A stretch of DNA of 64,000 bases from Caecitellus pseudoparvulus (taxonomy: Eukaryota > Protista > Bigyra: Bicosoecida), in NCBI GenBank assembly GCA_965644315.1, contig CBFFRQ010000042.1, positions 558,001 through 622,000 on the forward strand, given 5' to 3'. Below are positions 20,360 through 32,243 of this stretch, one piece after another. Numbering within the stretch: position 1 is the stretch's first letter; the number at the start of each line of letters is the position of its first letter. The position numbers and the translations under genes are program-made. The notes beneath the pieces are model-generated. The model did not search any database. It was given only the letters and a program-made list of their open reading frames with translations, and was not told the DNA's origin.

Positions 20360-20569
20360 GTCCGCCAACTGTGTGCGCCACGGAAACCTTGCCGACACCC
20401 TGGTGGGCGACAGAGCAGTGTTGGGGTCCGGGAAAAACGAAAACAACCCCACCCATTTAAGCTAGAAAAGTATTTTCACGCTATTTCTCATAGTTCAGGT
20501 TGTGTATGCTCTGTAGCAGCTTCAAGTAGGAGCTTGTGCGGCCTCCGCCCAAATCGCGGAAATTGAAAC

Positions 20570-22758
20570 ATGACCAGCCCTGCCTCCAGGCGCAGAAGGT
20601 GCGCAGCATTGTTCTGAGCGCGGTACTACTGGCAAAATTCATGAGAGACAGCGCAAATATCATTGCCATACCTGCCCCCGTTCGCAGGCGGGCTGCTAGG
20701 AGTCAAGAGCCGGCGCGCACTCCAGCAGCTTTCAGCCCGATCACATCATCGCGGCAAGGTGAGTCCCTCTCACCGTCCACGCGGAAATGGCACACCTTGT
20801 CACCCCAGGCCACCTTACCCTACCCAGACGAGGAATCATTCGCCAGAGCCCTGGACTCTGCAAGCGAGCTGCGCTTGGGGCCAGCTGCCGACACGATCTC
20901 CACAGCCGCCAGCCCAGACAGGCCAGAGTGGATCCAGCCACAAACTCCTCCCCAGGGCAGCTCAGGGCGCAGGGGAATCCGAAGACCCAAGCAATCGCAC
21001 CATTTGCCTTCCTCTACCACCCCCTCCTTTCGGATGGCCCAGCGCAGCACGCCGATGCACTCTTCGCCGCTCGTGCCGCGCACCGTGCACCACGGGGAGG
21101 CCAGCAGTGACTGGGGGGGCGGGGACGACGAGGTGGGGGCTCCAGTGCCCCCGGGGATCACCCCGCAGCTCAGCACTGTGCCGGAGGTCAGCAACGATGG
21201 TGCAGCACCCCTCCCTGCTGCCCCCTCTGTCACTGGACCTGCGCAGCGCCCGGCAAGGCCACAACATGCAGGCACTGCTGCGTTGTTGGACGGGGCCGTG
21301 CGGCCCATTCCCAGCCCAGGGCGTGCCACGCTCGTGCAGGACATGACTGCTCACTTGCTTGCGCAGTGTGGCCCTGACCCCCCCGCTGCTCCCCGAAGCG
21401 CACCCTCGTCGCCCGGACTGGCGTGTGCCTCAGCAGTGCAGCACGAGCAACTCCGCACCAGTGCGCAACTGCGCCAGTTGGAGGTGGTAGGGCCAGGCGC
21501 CCCATTGCCCGCTGTGCAAGCCACCAAGCAGGGCCTTGCAGAAGGCGCGGCAATAGTTGCAGCACAGCGTGAAGCAGAGAGGCAGGAAGCAGAGAGACTG
21601 GAAGCAGAGCAGCGTGAAGCAGAGCAGCGTGAAGCAGAGAGGCAGGAAGCAGAGAGACTGGAAGCAGAGAGGCAGGAAGCAGAGAGACTGGAAGCAGAGA
21701 GGCAGGAAGCAGAGAGGCGGGAAGCAGGGGCTGCTGCCGCAACTCCCGCATCATCTTCGCAAACTGCCTCCACGGCCACAGCGCCAGAGTTCGACTTGGC
21801 TGCCTTGCGAAGTGCCTACCTTGAGCAAAAAGCCACCACCAAGCGCCATTTTGGCAGTGAGTTTGACACGGGGTATGCTGACGAAGACACCTACCCGCGC
21901 GAGGAGCGGCTGTTTGAGCAGGCCACCTTGGCTCGAAACGCGTTGACGTCCGAAGCTGCAAGCGTGGATGACTACGTGCGCAAGATGAAGCGTGCATACG
22001 AAGAGCTGGGCAGCTGCTACAGCTCTGACCCGGGGGTGGTAGCTGCTGCCCGCAACGCCCTACTGGGCAGCATCGTGGATGCGATGGTGGTTGGTCGGTC
22101 CCCCGTGGGTGACACGTACAGCATCGCACAGGACTTCGCCAAAGACGCCGCCAGCGCCAGGGTCATCATGCGTCTGGCAGATGACGTGCCTGGGGTCCTG
22201 GACATGGCTCTTGGCTGCATCGTGGACCTGGTGCCTGAGCTGGCAGGAGCGCCCCGACGCGCTGACCAAGCGCTGCCCTGCACCACCCCCCAAGGCGAAA
22301 CTGACCACCTTTTCCTCCAAGTTGGTGCGCTGGCTGTGCTGGGGTCTATGGTGGGAGCTGCAGACCGCAGCAAGCCTCCTCAGGAAGCCCTCGTCACGAT
22401 GGCGTGGAAGCTCGCTGTGCGGTGCACGAAGTCCAGCTTCCAGTGCAGCATCGGGGACGGCGTGGTGCTGTTTGCGCCACTGCTGTGGATGCTGTGGTCC
22501 CGTGCTGGGATCAAGCTGCGTGAGCGCTTCCCGCGATCCGCACCCCGGCTGTGGGCGGCCCTGCACGAGCAGTGGCTTGCGCCAGCCTCAGCCACAGACG
22601 CCTCGTGTCGCCTTCTGCATGCGATTCCTCAAGATCGCCACCCACAGGCAGTATTTTTCCTGCACAAACTGCAGGGCAAGTTGTTAGCTGATAGAGCACA
22701 TGGGTATGCCCATGCTGCTCCATGCCAGGAGCAAGACGGGGGTGCGCACTCTGCGTGA
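20570..22758 (+). CDS. GLE1-like mRNA export factor (disordered N-terminus, charged coiled coil, helical C-domain)
   Basis: Proposed ATG 20570 with introns 20599-20687 and 20759-20827. The C-terminal segment MAWKLAVR...LWSRAGIKLRERF...LWAALHEQWL follows the GLE1 pattern (AW.WL.R...FL..AG..L...Y..QF.KLL). Recognised by eye only. Confidence 0.5.
21571..21720 (+). repeat. 15-bp tandem repeat x10 encoding EAE[R/Q][Q/L/R]
   Basis: GAAGCAGAG recurs every 15 nt. Confidence 0.95.
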
Positions 22759-26852: not shown

Positions 26853-27228
26853 ATCCCCGGTTGTGGAGTTTCAGCCTGAAACTCTAAGCATGTCCGCCTC
26901 GCTAAGCACCACAACAGTCTCAATCTACCATGCATGTCTTGACCTTCATGAAGCCTTAAATTTGGGATTTGCTTGCCCGGTGTACTTGTCGCTGCCACGG
27001 CTGTATTCTGAGCAGGGAGACCCGTCGTGGAAGCCTTGACATCAGTCCAGCGAGGGCACAAATTCGAATGCACTCCGCGTAGGACACCAACCCCACCTTG
27101 TCGGCAGAAGTTGCGGACAAGTGTGAGGCTGTGTCGTCATCTCCACTCGCACAAGTTGCGAGTGTTTGCAAGTGCGGCGTTCCAGTGCCGTCCTATGCCT
27201 GGGCAGCTCAGCCTGCATTCCCAGTGAC

Positions 27229-30200
27229 ATGGCTGCAGCCCAACATACAGTGAAGGTGTATGAGGAGGTTGAGGACGAGGACTGCAATGGCGACTTTGCA
27301 GTGGGGAGTCCAGTTGACGTCTCTACTGCGGCCTTGCTGGGCGGACAAAGCCACACCCTGAGAAATGGCTCGGACACTGTGCCTGTCACTCAGCCTGCGC
27401 AGCAGCCGGGTCTGAACATCGCAGTAGGCGATACGTACGGTGTAGTGTTTTTCATGCTGGACGGGGGTAAGTGTCGTGCCCTCCTTGCACTGCAGACACG
27501 ACCCCCACCTTCACTGCGGAAAATGCCACAGGTTTTGCACTTGCGCGCACCAGCGCCGTGGCAACTGCAGCTTCACAAGCTGCCAGCAAGGCCGAGGAGG
27601 AAGGAGATCCCCATGAAGAGGCGGTGGCCGGCGTTGTGAGGCTCAAGGGTGGTGCTTCCTCGCAAACGGTTGGCTTGCTGCTGTCTGCCGATCAGCAGAC
27701 GTTGGCTGTGGCGAGCGAGGCTGGCGGAGTGGCGACCGTGGCGTTGTTTAGGGCCGAAGACCTTGCCGCCATGGCTTTATCTTCTAGGAGCTCTGAAGTG
27801 ACACTCCCCGCCCCGGTACAGGCCTGCGACTTCGACGGCTCCGTGACCTGCATGCAGTGGATTGAAGGTGGCGAGGCGGTCATGGTCCTCTGCCAGGAGC
27901 GCACTGCTGGCAGTCAGACGCGGGTCGTAGCGTCTCTGGGCACACTGTCTGTGACGAGCGGGGCAGTGGCGAGCACAGAGTGCCCAGGCCTGACTGCTGC
28001 CGCTTGGATTCCAGCTGAGGGCAGCGGGGAAGCGGAGCTGCTCTTCGGCACTGCCAGCGGCGAGATCCGCAGCTGCGCCTGGTCAGCTCACAGCGAGATC
28101 CTTGGGTGTGACGGAGGAGCCCTTGCAACCCATGCTAGGAGTGGTGACATTGTACATGTTGGCAGGGCACTGGGTTCCTCGGAAGCGTATTCCGTGGCTC
28201 GTGTGGCGGTGCAGGAGGCTGCTCGTGGGTGGCTTGCCCTGGCCTTGGTGTGTGCCTCTGACTCGGGCCAAGTTCTGCCGGTTGTCCTGGCTAAAGGCCA
28301 GCAGGGCCGCGGTGCATGGACCGTGCACATCTTGGGCAGTGACGTCGGACCCCCACAAGTGCCCCTGTCACAGGGGCCAGCTACGTGGAGCATTGCGAAC
28401 ATCCCCGAGTGGAACATGTTCATCCTGGGGCACTCTCACAGCAGTGACCTCGACTTTGTGTTTCTGGGATGCACAGATGACTCGGGGGAAGAAGAGTGGC
28501 ACGCTTTGAGGTTCATGGAGACGGACTACGCGTTGCGGCCCCAGGTGTTCAGTTTGTCACAAGGCATCCCCATCTCCGGCGTGGCCGTGGACAGGAGCAC
28601 GGAAGTTTCAGGTCCTGATTCCGGCTCCGGGCCCGCTCTGCTCGTCCTCACCGGTATAGCAAGCGTTCTGCAAGGGTGCCTACTGCCGTACGACGACGCG
28701 ATGGACTTGGGGTTCAACGATGAAGACAGCCACCTTCCTGATGCATTGCCTTGGCTGGACGTGACTGTGCCTCGCTCCCCACGGCCGGGCCCTGCCAGCA
28801 GCAACCCAACAGTGCCAGCCGCAGCACCAGCAGCAGCACCCTCGCCAGCGCCTGTGGCAGCACCCCCACAGGCAACACCGAGTTTTGGGCTAGGACGACC
28901 TGAAAGCAGCTCCCGACCGACGCTGGCCGCAACAGGCAACGCTTTCTCGGGCGGGCGTCCCCACTCTTCGCCTGCGGCTCCCGCAGGTGCCTCGACCTCG
29001 CACAGACGTGCAAGTGGCGGGGCAGTGGGGTCTACAGCTGACACAAGCTCTTCACCAAGCTCGCACGTGCCACGGCAGGCAGCAAGCCGTGTTTCTGAGT
29101 GGCGTGCGCAGCGCAGTGAGCGCCAAGTTCAGCCAGAGCACAGAGCAGACCAGCTCGCCCAGCAACTCCAAGATGCGATGGACGACTCCCTCCAAGACCT
29201 GGTGGTCATGGCGCAGGAAGACGTGCAAGCGGGGTCGGAGTCCATGCCACTGGCTGACGCCTGCCGCGACGTGGTGGCTGCCTTGGATGCCGTGTCGGGG
29301 TCCCCCGACCAAGAAGCAAGCGGGCTGAGGGGCACGGCTCGGACCCTTCAGCGCGTCAACGCATTGGCGAACTCTGTTTACCAGCTCCAAACACAGCTGC
29401 TCTTTGTGATGGGGGACGTCACTGCCCTGCACAAGCAAGCCGAAGCGCAAGTGCAGCTTCACTCTTCGCCAAACTTTGATCGCCATGCTGCCACCGCCCC
29501 CTTGGACCCCTCCAGTGCAACCCTGCGCAGTTCCAACCAGCGCAGGCAGCGTTTGCTGGAAGTGCGCGTGGAAGCAGCCAGGTGCAGCTTGAAGGACATC
29601 ATTGAAGCGAGGAATAGCGGCGCGTCAGATGGGCATGGCTCCTCGCGCACTGCATTGCACTTGTTGCAGCGAACCGTGAACAGCCTGCTGGCAATGTGCG
29701 AGCGTGTTGGCAGCGACACAGATGCTCTGCAGAGCAGGCTACACTCCATGCGTGATAGCGTGGGGCAGGCATCGATGCGAACTGGGCAATCGTTCGAACC
29801 ACCCGTCGCTCCGAGGCATGGCTCCGCAGTCGCTGAGCGCGCTCCATTCATGCCCGGCCGGCGTGGAGCTGCGGGCCCACACTCAGCCTTTCCAGGTGCC
29901 TTTGAGCACGTTGCCTCGCCTTCTAGCGACCTGGCCCGCATTCATGAGCGGGCTACTGCTTCCCAGGCAAGTACTGGCTCTCAGGAAGCGATAGACGCCA
30001 CTCGGCAACACGACGCTACGCAAATTCTGGACATGTTGTGGGGGCAGCCAGCAACCGGGGCTGCCCACTGTGCTGTCTTGGACCACTTGGCATCCCTGCC
30101 CGATTCGGTGGAGGCTGGTTCACTGGCAGGCGAAGCTCCAAGCGACGAGGTGGCTTCGATGCAGCAGCGAGTCTTGGGCTTCGAGCGGGCCTTCCAGTCC

Positions 30201-32243
30201 GCGGAAGCCTTCAATACCGCCGTGGAGGCCACCCTGCAAGCCCTCATTCCAGACTTCCCAGAGCCACAAGTAGCGCCAGAGGTGCCTTCCGTCGCGCCAC
30301 GCAGGCCGCGGATTGTGGCTGCCCCGGCCCCATCTCAAGTTGACAGCAGCTCGCCTGCTGTGGCCGATTCCATCGTGCCCCCCGAAGCACCTCCACGTGT
30401 GTTTCCTGATGGGGATGGTGGGGAAGAGTCAGCCAGGGCGCTGGCGCCGTTGCCGCAAGCACCACCATCGCCAGCTCCAGCGCCAGTGGCTGCGTCAACC
30501 CCATCTCTGAGCATTCGAGAGCCAAGGACAGCCACTAGTGCCCCCGTTTTGACCCCAGCAAGTGAGGCCACCCCCACCATCATTTCCGCATATCCTGCAA
30601 CATCCTCGTCCATCGCCCCAACAAGCGCCGGCATCAGCAGTGGGGGTGGCGGTGGGCTGTTGGGCACATCAGGTGGTGCGGGCACATCCAGCGGCTTGGG
30701 CGGCGGTGCGCCCAGCATCAGTACGAGTGCCGGGGGCGCCACGGGCGGGGGCCTGGGTCTGGGTCTGAGCGGGAGCAGCAGTGGGGGTGGCGGCGGGCTG
30801 TTGGGCACATCAGGTGGTGCGGGCACATCCAGCGGCTTGGGCGGCGGTGCGCCCAGCATCAGTACGAGTGCCGGGGGCGCCACGAGCGGGGGCCTGGGTC
30901 TGGGTCTGAGCGGGAGCAGCAGTGGGGGTGGCGGCGGGCTGTTGGGCACATCAGGTGGTGCGGGCACATCCAGCGGCTTGGGCGGCGGTGCGCCCAGCAT
31001 CAGTACGAGTGCCGGGGGCGCCACGAGCGGGGGCCTGGGTCTGGGTCTGAGCGGGAGCAGCAGTGGGGGTGGCGGCGGGCTGTTGGGCACATCAGGTGGT
31101 GCGGGCACATCCAGCGGCTTGGGCGGCGGTGCGCCCAGCATCAGTACGAGTGCCGGGGGCGCCACGAGCGGGGGCCTGGGTCTGGGTCTGAGCGGGAGCA
31201 GCAGTGGGGGTGGCGGCGGGCTGTTGGGCACATCAGGTGGTGCGGGCACATCCAGCGGCTTGGGCGGCGGTGCGCCCAGCATCAGTACGGGTGCCGGGGG
31301 CGCCACGAGCGGGGGCCTGGGTCTGGGTCTGAGCGGGAGCAGCAGTGGGGGTGGCGGTGGGCTGTTGGGCACATCAGGTGGTGCGGGCACATCCAGCGGC
31401 TTGGGCGGCGGTGCGCCCAGCATCAGTACGAGTGCCGGGGGCGCCACGGGCGGGGGCCTGGGTCTGGGTCTGAGCGGGAGCAGCAGTGGGGGTGGCGGCG
31501 GGCTGTTGGGCACATCAGGTGGTGCGGGCACATCCAGCGGCTTGGGCGGCGGTGCACTTGGAGGGGGACTCGCTTCGGGTGGACTTGGGGCAGCTACCTC
31601 AGCCGTCGGGCTTGGTGCTGGCCCTGGCGGAGCCATTCAGTCTGCTGCCCAGCCGGCCACAGATGAGCAGCACACCCAAGCGCTGCTTTTGTTTTTCCAG
31701 AAGAATTTCCCAGAGAAAGCCAAGCCTGCCAACGTGGTCAAGCAGTTCAACAAGTACAAGGCCGGCGTGTGGGGCAAGCTGCTGGGAAAGTACCCGCAGC
31801 TTGCGGCAAGCATTCGGCAGCATGCACCTGCAGGTTCGCTGCCAGCAGGGGGAGGCTTGCAAGGGGGGCTTGGGCAAGTTGCGAGTGGTGGCGTGCCAGC
31901 TTCAGGCATGGCTGCGATGACACAAGCGACTTTCGGCAGCAGTGGTGTTGGTCTTGGTGGGCCACTTGCTGGCGGGGCTCTGGCGGGTGGAGGGGGTCTT
32001 GGGTCAAGCACTCTTGGAATGGCGACGAATCCTGCCGGCGCCTCCTCCACCTTGACGCCAGGATTCATGTCAGCAGGAGCTGCACCAGCAGGTGCCTCAA
32101 CCTTTGGAAGCGCCCTGGGTGCCACCAGCGCCCCTGCTGGTGGTGGGCTAGGTTTGATGAGCGGCGGGGGCGGGGGGGGGCTTTTGGGAGGGTCCATGGC
32201 TCAATCAGGGGGTGCGCTGTCTGTCCTTCAGCCGCGGCGCTGA
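27229..32243 (+). CDS. NUP214: Nucleoporin Nup214/Nup159-like (beta-propeller, coiled coil, Gly-rich repeat domain)
   Basis: After intron 27467-27531 the N-terminus reads IAVGDTYGVVFF..GFALART...LLLSADQQTLAV...IPEWNMFILG, paralleling the Nup214 propeller (plant LAISERHAVLF..GFFVGRT..LSLSADDSILAV). A central coiled coil and a low-complexity G/S/T C-terminus follow. Confidence 0.75.
30636..31555 (+). repeat. 141-bp (47-aa) near-perfect coding tandem repeat, about 6.5 copies
   Basis: TTGGGCACATCAGG recurs at 30660, 30801, 30942, 31083, 31224, 31365 and 31506. Confidence 0.97.

Follow-up and report, generated by a model that had tools for sequence, protein, structure and literature searches.

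Phe-Gly (FG) motifs are regarded as the functional element common to all nuclear pores, providing both the cohesion of the barrier and the grip on transport receptors, and, to our knowledge, all described relatives of the nucleoporin (Nup) Nup214 carry Phe-Gly repeats. Here, we analyze a two-exon gene of the bicosoecid flagellate Caecitellus pseudoparvulus whose product ends in a repeat domain built almost entirely on Leu-Gly (LG) motifs. The gene lies within a window of 64,000 nucleotides (contig CBFFRQ010000042.1, forward strand; G000:C42:558001-622000) from a genome assembly of 30.6 Mb in 215 contigs with a G+C content of ~65%, and all positions given below are those of the window unless another contig is named.

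FG motifs cohere with one another and are captured by pockets of transport receptors; for instance, CRM1 receives eight FG motifs of human Nup214 in its pockets (PMC5898484). Departures from the canonical motif have been described in engineered and in natural repeats. GLLG 52x12, an engineered variant of the Nup98 GLFG 12-mer from work on the reason for the use of phenylalanine, does not phase-separate without an extra leucine that restores its hydrophobicity (Ng et al. 2023, PMC9918544). The Phe-free phase of the GLLG//L variant is still selective; it is closed to native importin-beta, transportin and Xpo1, NTF2 entry is reduced 50-fold, and the authors infer co-evolution of repeat motifs and receptor pockets (PMC9918544). 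The closest natural case is that of the NIFN motifs in the micronuclear Nup98 and Nup214 of Tetrahymena (MicNup98A/B and MicNup214; PMC5450191), which, similar to the present one, is a natural and functionally relevant departure from FG/GLFG, present in both the Nup98 and the Nup214 paralogues of a single pore type. In Tetrahymena, however, phenylalanine is kept and glycine is changed, and canonical GLFG/FG paralogues are present in the same cell, whereas the residue replaced in the flagellate is phenylalanine, and searches of its genome yielded no FG-rich paralogue of Nup98, Nup62 or Nup214.

We read the gene, with a probability of about 0.6, as encoding a nucleoporin of the Nup214/Nup159 type, located at the cytoplasmic face of the pore, in which a domain with leucine stickers replaces the FG domain. 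The evidence comes from the repeat domain itself, from the other nucleoporins of the same genome, and from the predicted architecture of the protein.

The Leu-Gly Repeat Domain

The gene (27229-32243, plus strand, 1649 codons) encodes a protein of 1649 amino acids, the last 535 of which, from position 30636 to the end of the open reading frame, consist of 36.1% Gly, 16.6% Ser, 12.3% Ala, 12.1% Leu and 6.9% Thr, with 1.3% Phe and only 2.6% charged residues (Asp, Glu, Lys and Arg combined). This tail contains 37 LG, including 8 GLLG and 25 GLG motifs, versus 2 FG, namely ATFG and STFG, both of which are located in the C-terminal part of 137 residues. The counts bear out the preliminary description of this DNA, which reported an FG-Nup-like composition for the C-terminal ~530 residues and four LG per 47-residue repeat, with roughly 35 LG in total against two FG. 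The placement of leucine beside glycine is not a mere consequence of composition: residue shuffles of the tail yield a mean of 23.4 LG, and none of the 5000 reached 37. Furthermore, 43 of the 65 leucines in the tail are flanked on both sides by Gly or Leu, which is true of 3 of the 84 leucines in the N-terminal 1047 residues.

The larger part of the domain is a tandem array, for which Tandem Repeats Finder (30635-31555) reports 6.5 copies of a 141-bp unit with 99% matches and 0 indels, each unit carrying four LG. The 307 residues of the array include neither phenylalanine nor any other aromatic residue and no charged residue (0%); they are 44% Gly and 14.7% hydrophobic, with 26 LG and a Leu or Ile every 6-12 residues. 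Because 26 of the 37 LG are thus copies of the four in one unit, ~15 motifs can be counted as independent, 4 from the unit and 11 from the remainder of the tail. By the near identity of its copies, the unit is very young, and the array is the product of a recent amplification or homogenization of a single 47-residue sequence. Of the seven phenylalanines in the 535 residues, four belong to a small charged helical module, which has no match in a fold search.

The array displays the class trait of FG-Nups, that is, a disordered, uncharged, Gly-rich domain with regularly spaced hydrophobic motifs beside Gly, without phenylalanine as the motif residue. Similarly, the long FG-repeat domain expected of Nup214/Nup159 is absent, with 2 FG versus 37 LG, although the position, composition and low charge of the tail match such a domain. 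The profiles PF13634 and PF18617 have no Pfam match in the protein. Taken together, these features support the view that the tail is a repeat domain of the nucleoporin type, rich in Gly and uncharged, with Leu and Ile where phenylalanine would be expected.

Leu-Gly and Met-Gly Motifs in Other Nucleoporins of the Genome

Nucleoporins of the same genome were located with Pfam models, and FG, LG and Met-Gly (MG) motifs were then counted in each (Table 1). This comparison had been proposed in the preliminary description, and its outcome strongly favors that description: Nup98-96, Nup62 and a Nup54-like protein also carry LG or MG, so that the shift is a trait of the channel and cytoplasmic-side nucleoporins rather than of one gene. 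The repeat domain of Nup98-96 (47% Gly, 24.5% hydrophobic) is composed of GGLMGG and GGLLGG motifs and flanks a segment that we read, from its sequence, as the Rae1-binding (GLEBS) segment. In Nup98 and Nup54, a Leu-Leu or Leu-Met pair recurs every 7-9 residues between pure Gly spacers, so that 21-25% of the residues are hydrophobic. The repeats of the Nup54-like protein are located in a separate upstream open frame, taken here for an exon of the same gene. All three proteins share with the Nup214-like protein a motif class (GLLG, SLLG and GLMG), uncharged spacers rich in Gly, and tandem units that are nearly identical to one another; they differ from it in being identified by Pfam and, in the case of Nup98, in being Met-heavy, whereas the Nup214-like protein uses Leu together with the Ile of PSIS.

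The replacement does not extend to every nucleoporin. Nup50 keeps five GGGSLFGGSLLSGSS units (5 SLFG) beside SLLS, which indicates that phenylalanine was kept on the nuclear-basket side and lost in the channel nucleoporins. A further protein, with a lamin-tail domain (LTD) match and hence called LTD-Nup here, has a nuclear localization signal-like N terminus and ~13 repeats in which SGGSLLGTS alternates with SGGSLFGSVG; by its sequence, it is possibly a basket or lamina-linked nucleoporin. Conversely, an ankyrin protein (C40, L029:910-4623, plus strand; Ank_2, E 2e-17) carries ~14 SGGLLGG repeats and shows that LG repeats of the nucleoporin type also occur on a scaffold that is not a nucleoporin. 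Other repeat-rich frames encode an ArfGAP-like protein with DPFG motifs and a large HEAT-type, ECM29-like protein (C43:130672-133821, L008) with five GLFGQ-type motifs in an insert. Among the transport factors, NTF2 binds FG; a genome scan with its model, PF02136, at E<=10 gave no match, which we do not take as absence of NTF2.

Homologous-protein searches with the Nup98-96 core and the Nup62 C terminus revealed no relatives other than a Symbiodinium sp. KB8 record for the former, and a second metagenome locus scan, like the first, found none either. The record in question, a 1228-residue 'unnamed protein product, partial [Symbiodinium sp. KB8]' in NCBI, is 100% identical to Nup98-96 (85% of the 761-residue query region). 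Probably, cultures of marine algae often harbor this flagellate as a guest or contaminant.

Relationship to Nup214 and Nup159

The protein shares with Nup214 (CAN) of animals and plants and with Nup159 of yeast a predicted architecture of propeller, helical anchor and long, disordered, uncharged, repeat-bearing C terminus, arranged in the order of the animal and plant proteins. It is unlike them in its motif content (37 LG versus 2 FG), in showing no similarity by HMMER, in the presence of a helical module within the repeats and in the near-perfect 47-residue array. For the searches and structure predictions described here, exon 1 and exon 2 were always treated separately and never as one joined sequence.

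One link to the family comes from protein language model features. When residues 1-440 are compared with the ESM Atlas, the top three clusters (0.94, 0.92 and 0.91) all carry PF16755, the top cluster has 209 of 256 features in common with the query, and the best family-bearing matches agree on PF16755 in 10 of 10 cases. By the calibration of this search, true membership of the N-terminal region in the PF16755 family is favored, short of proof. The single-sequence AlphaFold2 (AF2) model of the N-terminal piece is all-beta, with ~24 strands. For residues 500-1000, the nearest ESM clusters (0.89-0.91) have neither a name nor a Pfam family, and the best named ones, Nup58/p45 (0.85), Nup214 (0.83) and FG-Nup (0.81-0.83), are leads only. 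No other candidate for Nup214 emerged. PF16755 has three weak matches elsewhere in the genome, in EML-like, IFT-like and WD40-looking proteins, and none of the other repeat-rich frames found with PF13634 (LTD, ankyrin, ArfGAP-like with DPFG, and ECM29-like) combines a propeller with a coiled coil. The scans of the 30.6-Mb genome with these two models thus turned up no canonical FG-rich Nup214, a finding that would have spoken against the assignment made in the preliminary description.

Several results weigh against reading the gene as a Nup214/Nup159 with leucine stickers. No Pfam family, PF16755 included, matches the whole protein or any of four pieces of it at E<=10, and a profile scan of the genome with PF16755 does not pick this locus. 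Searches of PDB with phmmer using the N-terminal and middle regions found no relative, only chance matches to guanine deaminase at E of 1 or more; phmmer with 960 residues against 1.84 billion representatives recovered nothing but a 98%-identical fragment of 115 residues; a homologous-protein word search with residues 1-1040 gave no match; and metagenome locus scans revealed no relatives. ESM feature matches of >=0.9 arise for 4-10% of shuffled proteins, and the AF2 model of the N-terminal piece, with a mean predicted local distance difference test score (pLDDT) of 41, is unusable for a fold search. A complex prediction for the Nup62 C terminus and the helical region returned no verdict and is neutral as evidence. 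In addition, the LG motifs derive for the most part from a single young unit; FG persists in the genome, as SLFG in Nup50 and LTD-Nup and as GLFGQ in the ECM29-like protein; and the array, with 14.7% hydrophobic residues, is less hydrophobic than the engineered GLLG 12-mer (2 in 12), which did not phase-separate, so that the domain alone may not be cohesive.

The Nup214 identity proposed in the preliminary description thus draws indirect support from ESM features, architecture and the lack of another candidate and finds no backing in the HMMER searches; likewise, the profile and structure check on the N terminus is blank in Pfam and PDB, and its positive side consists of the ESM assignment to PF16755 and an all-beta model of low pLDDT. 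On the language-model features, the architecture and the absence of a competitor in the genome, we consider orthology to Nup214/Nup159 reasonably likely, and that the protein belongs to the FG class of pore proteins somewhat likelier still.

The blank homology searches leave room for a pore protein with LG repeats that is not an orthologue of Nup214/Nup159, either a lineage-specific nucleoporin or a Nup88/Nup82-like protein with a propeller and a coiled coil that acquired a repeat tail. In keeping with this possibility, nothing in the genome matched the Nup88 model PF10168, an uninformative result by which a separate Nup88 is not established, and the ankyrin protein with its GGLLGG repeats demonstrates that such tails also occur outside nucleoporins. 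However, the ESM features indicate the Nup159/Nup214 propeller family over Nup88 or a generic WD40 protein, the predicted succession of a propeller, a coiled coil and repeats follows animal and plant Nup214, and the PF16755 scans of the genome yield no other candidate, and we therefore regard a protein outside the Nup214/Nup159 family as unlikely.

Possible Function of the Repeat Domain

If the gene encodes a Nup214/Nup159-type nucleoporin, its N-terminal β-propeller would serve as in the known Nup214/Nup159, where it docks the helicase Dbp5/DDX19, the helical middle would anchor the protein in the pore by bundling with partners of the Nup62 and Nup88 types, and the disordered, uncharged, Gly-rich C-terminal domain would take the place of the FG domain, with Leu and some Ile as stickers (GLLG, SGLG and GLGLGL). 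Because phenylalanine is replaced by Leu or Met across the nucleoporins, barrier formation and receptor docking appear to be mainly aliphatic and thioether rather than aromatic, and the transport receptors presumably have co-adapted. The units are near-identical in each of these genes, which implies rapid turnover of the arrays, and such turnover may let one variant unit take over a whole domain. G+C pressure may favor the change from TTY to CTY; it would explain neither the methionines nor the retention of phenylalanine elsewhere. The sequence features, expression and splicing, the standard genetic code and the genome-wide pattern are observed directly, as is the lack of another candidate; from them we infer orthology to Nup214, localization at the pore, the binding of receptors and a change that went from Phe to Leu.

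The engineered GLLG repeats provide the nearest experimental counterpart, with the identical motif and a demonstration that a Phe-free selective phase is possible if total hydrophobicity is kept (PMC9918544). Unlike these synthetic sequences, the domains of the flagellate have Gly-only spacers, with ~21-25% hydrophobic residues in Nup98 and Nup54 and 14.7% in the Nup214-like array. By analogy, the packing of Nup98 and Nup54 would be the kind of compensation that the engineered variants predict, and the sparser Nup214-like array may act as a surface for docking and not as a cohesive barrier. Extending this to the whole pore, we tentatively propose, at slightly less than even odds, that the barrier and the docking sites were rebuilt on Leu-Gly and Met-Gly, with phenylalanine left only in basket-side nucleoporins and with importins and exportins co-evolved to aliphatic motifs.

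Alternatively, the Gly- and Leu-rich tail could be fast-evolving low-complexity sequence without FG-like function, generated by slippage and G+C-biased substitution in a genome of 65% G+C, with the Phe-retaining nucleoporins binding the receptors. The 99% identity between units, which marks a recent expansion, the low hydrophobic density of the array (14.7%) and the SLFG motifs of Nup50 and LTD-Nup are all compatible with this scenario, and G+C pressure would favor T-to-C changes, turning TTY into CTY. The engineered repeats can also be cited in its favor, GLLG being non-cohesive and the GLLG//L phase excluding native importin-beta, transportin and Xpo1 (PMC9918544). Yet the LG/MG motif class occupies the places where the GLFG/FG domains lie in Nup98, flanking the Rae1-binding segment, as well as in Nup62 and Nup54, leucine is non-randomly placed beside Gly, and charge is 0% over 307 residues. 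The Met of GLMG, encoded by ATG, is not driven by G+C content. Moreover, G+C-rich eukaryotes other than this one keep FG, and we consider a tail without FG-like function improbable.

Codon Usage, Genetic Code and Editing

Among the LG leucines of the tail, 15 are encoded by TTG, 14 by CTG, 7 by CTT and 1 by CTA. As the array has approximately two TTG and two CTG codons in LG per unit, a hand tally assigns the seven CTT to the 11 LG outside the array. Thus, the preliminary description was correct in that CTT prevails in the non-repeated tail and that each unit has two TTG, all one step from a Phe codon, whereas CTG, the commonest Leu codon of the tail (32 of 65), is two steps away. A change of the genetic code had been deemed unlikely on account of the SMC4 signature, and direct reading of this signature, NLSGGEK, 4 kb downstream (AAC TTG TCG GGC GGC GAG AAG), upholds the argument, TTG encoding the invariant Leu. 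Phenylalanine is in normal use, accounting for 2.3% of the folded part of the Nup214-like protein and 2.15% of SMC4, mostly as TTC.

Seawater metatranscriptome contigs were compared with the window over 27100-30630, that is, upstream of the tandem array. The differences involve mixed substitution types, some of them common to DNA run X5, and, by this pattern, look like strain variation. That the protein contains phenylalanine where the DNA specifies leucine, through RNA editing, codon reassignment or mistranslation, can be dismissed as extremely improbable, for although 13 of the 65 Leu codons (CTT and CTC) are one C-to-U step from Phe, with no other support found, such editing cannot make Phe of the other 52 (CTG, TTG and CTA), TTG is the invariant Leu of SMC4, Nup98 has ATG (Met) at the equivalent motif position, and the metatranscriptome differences over 27100-30630 look like strain variation.

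Gene Structure and Expression

The bulk of the gene is a plus-strand open frame of 1590 codons (27471-32243), to which a short first exon is joined across a 65-nucleotide intron (Table 1); the beta-rich N-terminal domain probably begins in exon 1. In a seawater metatranscriptome contig (X20, record 10; cut +1, side 145), 27465/27466 is joined to 27531/27532 with 65 nucleotides skipped, and the intron bases are kept in the DNA runs X1 and X5. The absence of the intron from the metatranscriptome contig indicates that the gene is real, spliced and expressed in the sea. The locus of the window was also found in metagenomes from the sea and in sequencing runs that bear the names of six other organisms.

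Table 1. Coordinates of the Nup214-like gene and its predicted domains (window positions) and of other nucleoporins of the same genome, with motif counts. C and L numbers are our labels for contigs and loci.
Feature	Location	Strand	Description and motif counts	Basis
Exon 1	27229..27466	+	ATG at 27229; 79 codons + 1 base; MAAAQHTVKVYEE...GVVFFMLDG	Base reading; splice joint in metatranscriptome contig
Intron	27467..27531	+	65 nt, GT..AG; frame shift of 2, as the exon frames demand	
Exon 2	27532..32243	+	Stop TGA at 32241-32243	
Beta-rich N-terminal domain	27532..28733	+	Exon-2 residues 1-400; probable Nup159/Nup214-type propeller	ESM Atlas features; AF2 single-sequence model
Pro/Ala/Ser-rich linker	28734..29075	+	Exon-2 residues 401-514; two isolated FG-type motifs, PSFG and NAFSGG	Translation
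Helical, coiled-coil-like middle	29076..30260	+	Exon-2 residues 515-909; putative pore anchor via Nup62- and Nup88-type partners	Translation
Pro/Ala/Ser/Thr-rich linker preceding the repeats	30261..30634	+		Translation
Tandem array	30635..31555	+	141-bp (47-aa) unit x 6.5, 99% identical; unit SSGGGGGLLGTSGGAGTSSGLGGGAPSISTSAGGATSGGLGLGLSGS	
Degenerate non-repeated LG stretch, ahead of the charged module	31556..31661	+		
Small charged module within the repeat domain	31662..31823	+	Four helices, ~55 residues; ...ALLLFFQKNFPEKAKPANVVKQFNKYKAGVWGKLLGKYPQLAASIRQH	
Non-repeated C-terminal tail	31830..32243	+	137 aa; 7 LG, 2 FG; 31% Gly, 21% hydrophobic	
Nup98-96	C20, L011:3899-9904	-	2002-codon frame; 0 FG, 21 LG, 30 MG in 543-residue domain	PF04096, E 2.9e-9
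Nup62	C13		1 FG, 21 LG, 0 MG; 351 residues of SLLG/GLLG	Nsp1_C, E 2.9e-12
Nup54-like	C30		0 FG, 20 LG, 0 MG	PF13874, E 1.5e-4, below cut-off
Nup50	C50:96824-99994, L020	-	5 FG, 5 LG, 0 MG (whole 571-aa frame)	PF08911, E 7.3e-6
LTD-Nup	C68, L028:3988-8313	-	11 FG, 16 LG, 3 MG (whole 1442-aa frame)	PF00932, E 6.3e-6, below cut-off, and Nucleoporin_FG

On the opposite strand, a Pro-rich frame of 433 residues (30335-31636, minus strand; PPPKPLDVPAPPDVPNSPPPPP...) was rejected as a gene, being the mirror of the Gly-rich frame through the complementarity of GGN and NCC codons. Upstream, the 740-residue frame at 20536-22758, suggested earlier to be GLE1-like, matches no Pfam family at E<=0.01, the GLE1 domain included; the frame contains an (EAERQ/EAERL)n repeat.

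Implications

Full-text literature searches for GLLG, GLMG, LG-repeat or Cafeteria nucleoporins returned engineering papers only, and no paper describing natural Phe-free repeats was found in the same literature; because most subscription journals lie outside this scope, the result is no proof of novelty. For genome annotation, the practical consequence is that nucleoporin screens relying on FG will overlook the genes of this type in this lineage. If our reading is correct, this flagellate would offer a matched natural pair of repeat and receptor, testable with recombinant proteins, and a natural counter-example to the assumption that FG repeats have universally relied on phenylalanine since the last eukaryotic common ancestor: a cell that runs its nuclear transport almost without the phenylalanines thought to be essential for it.

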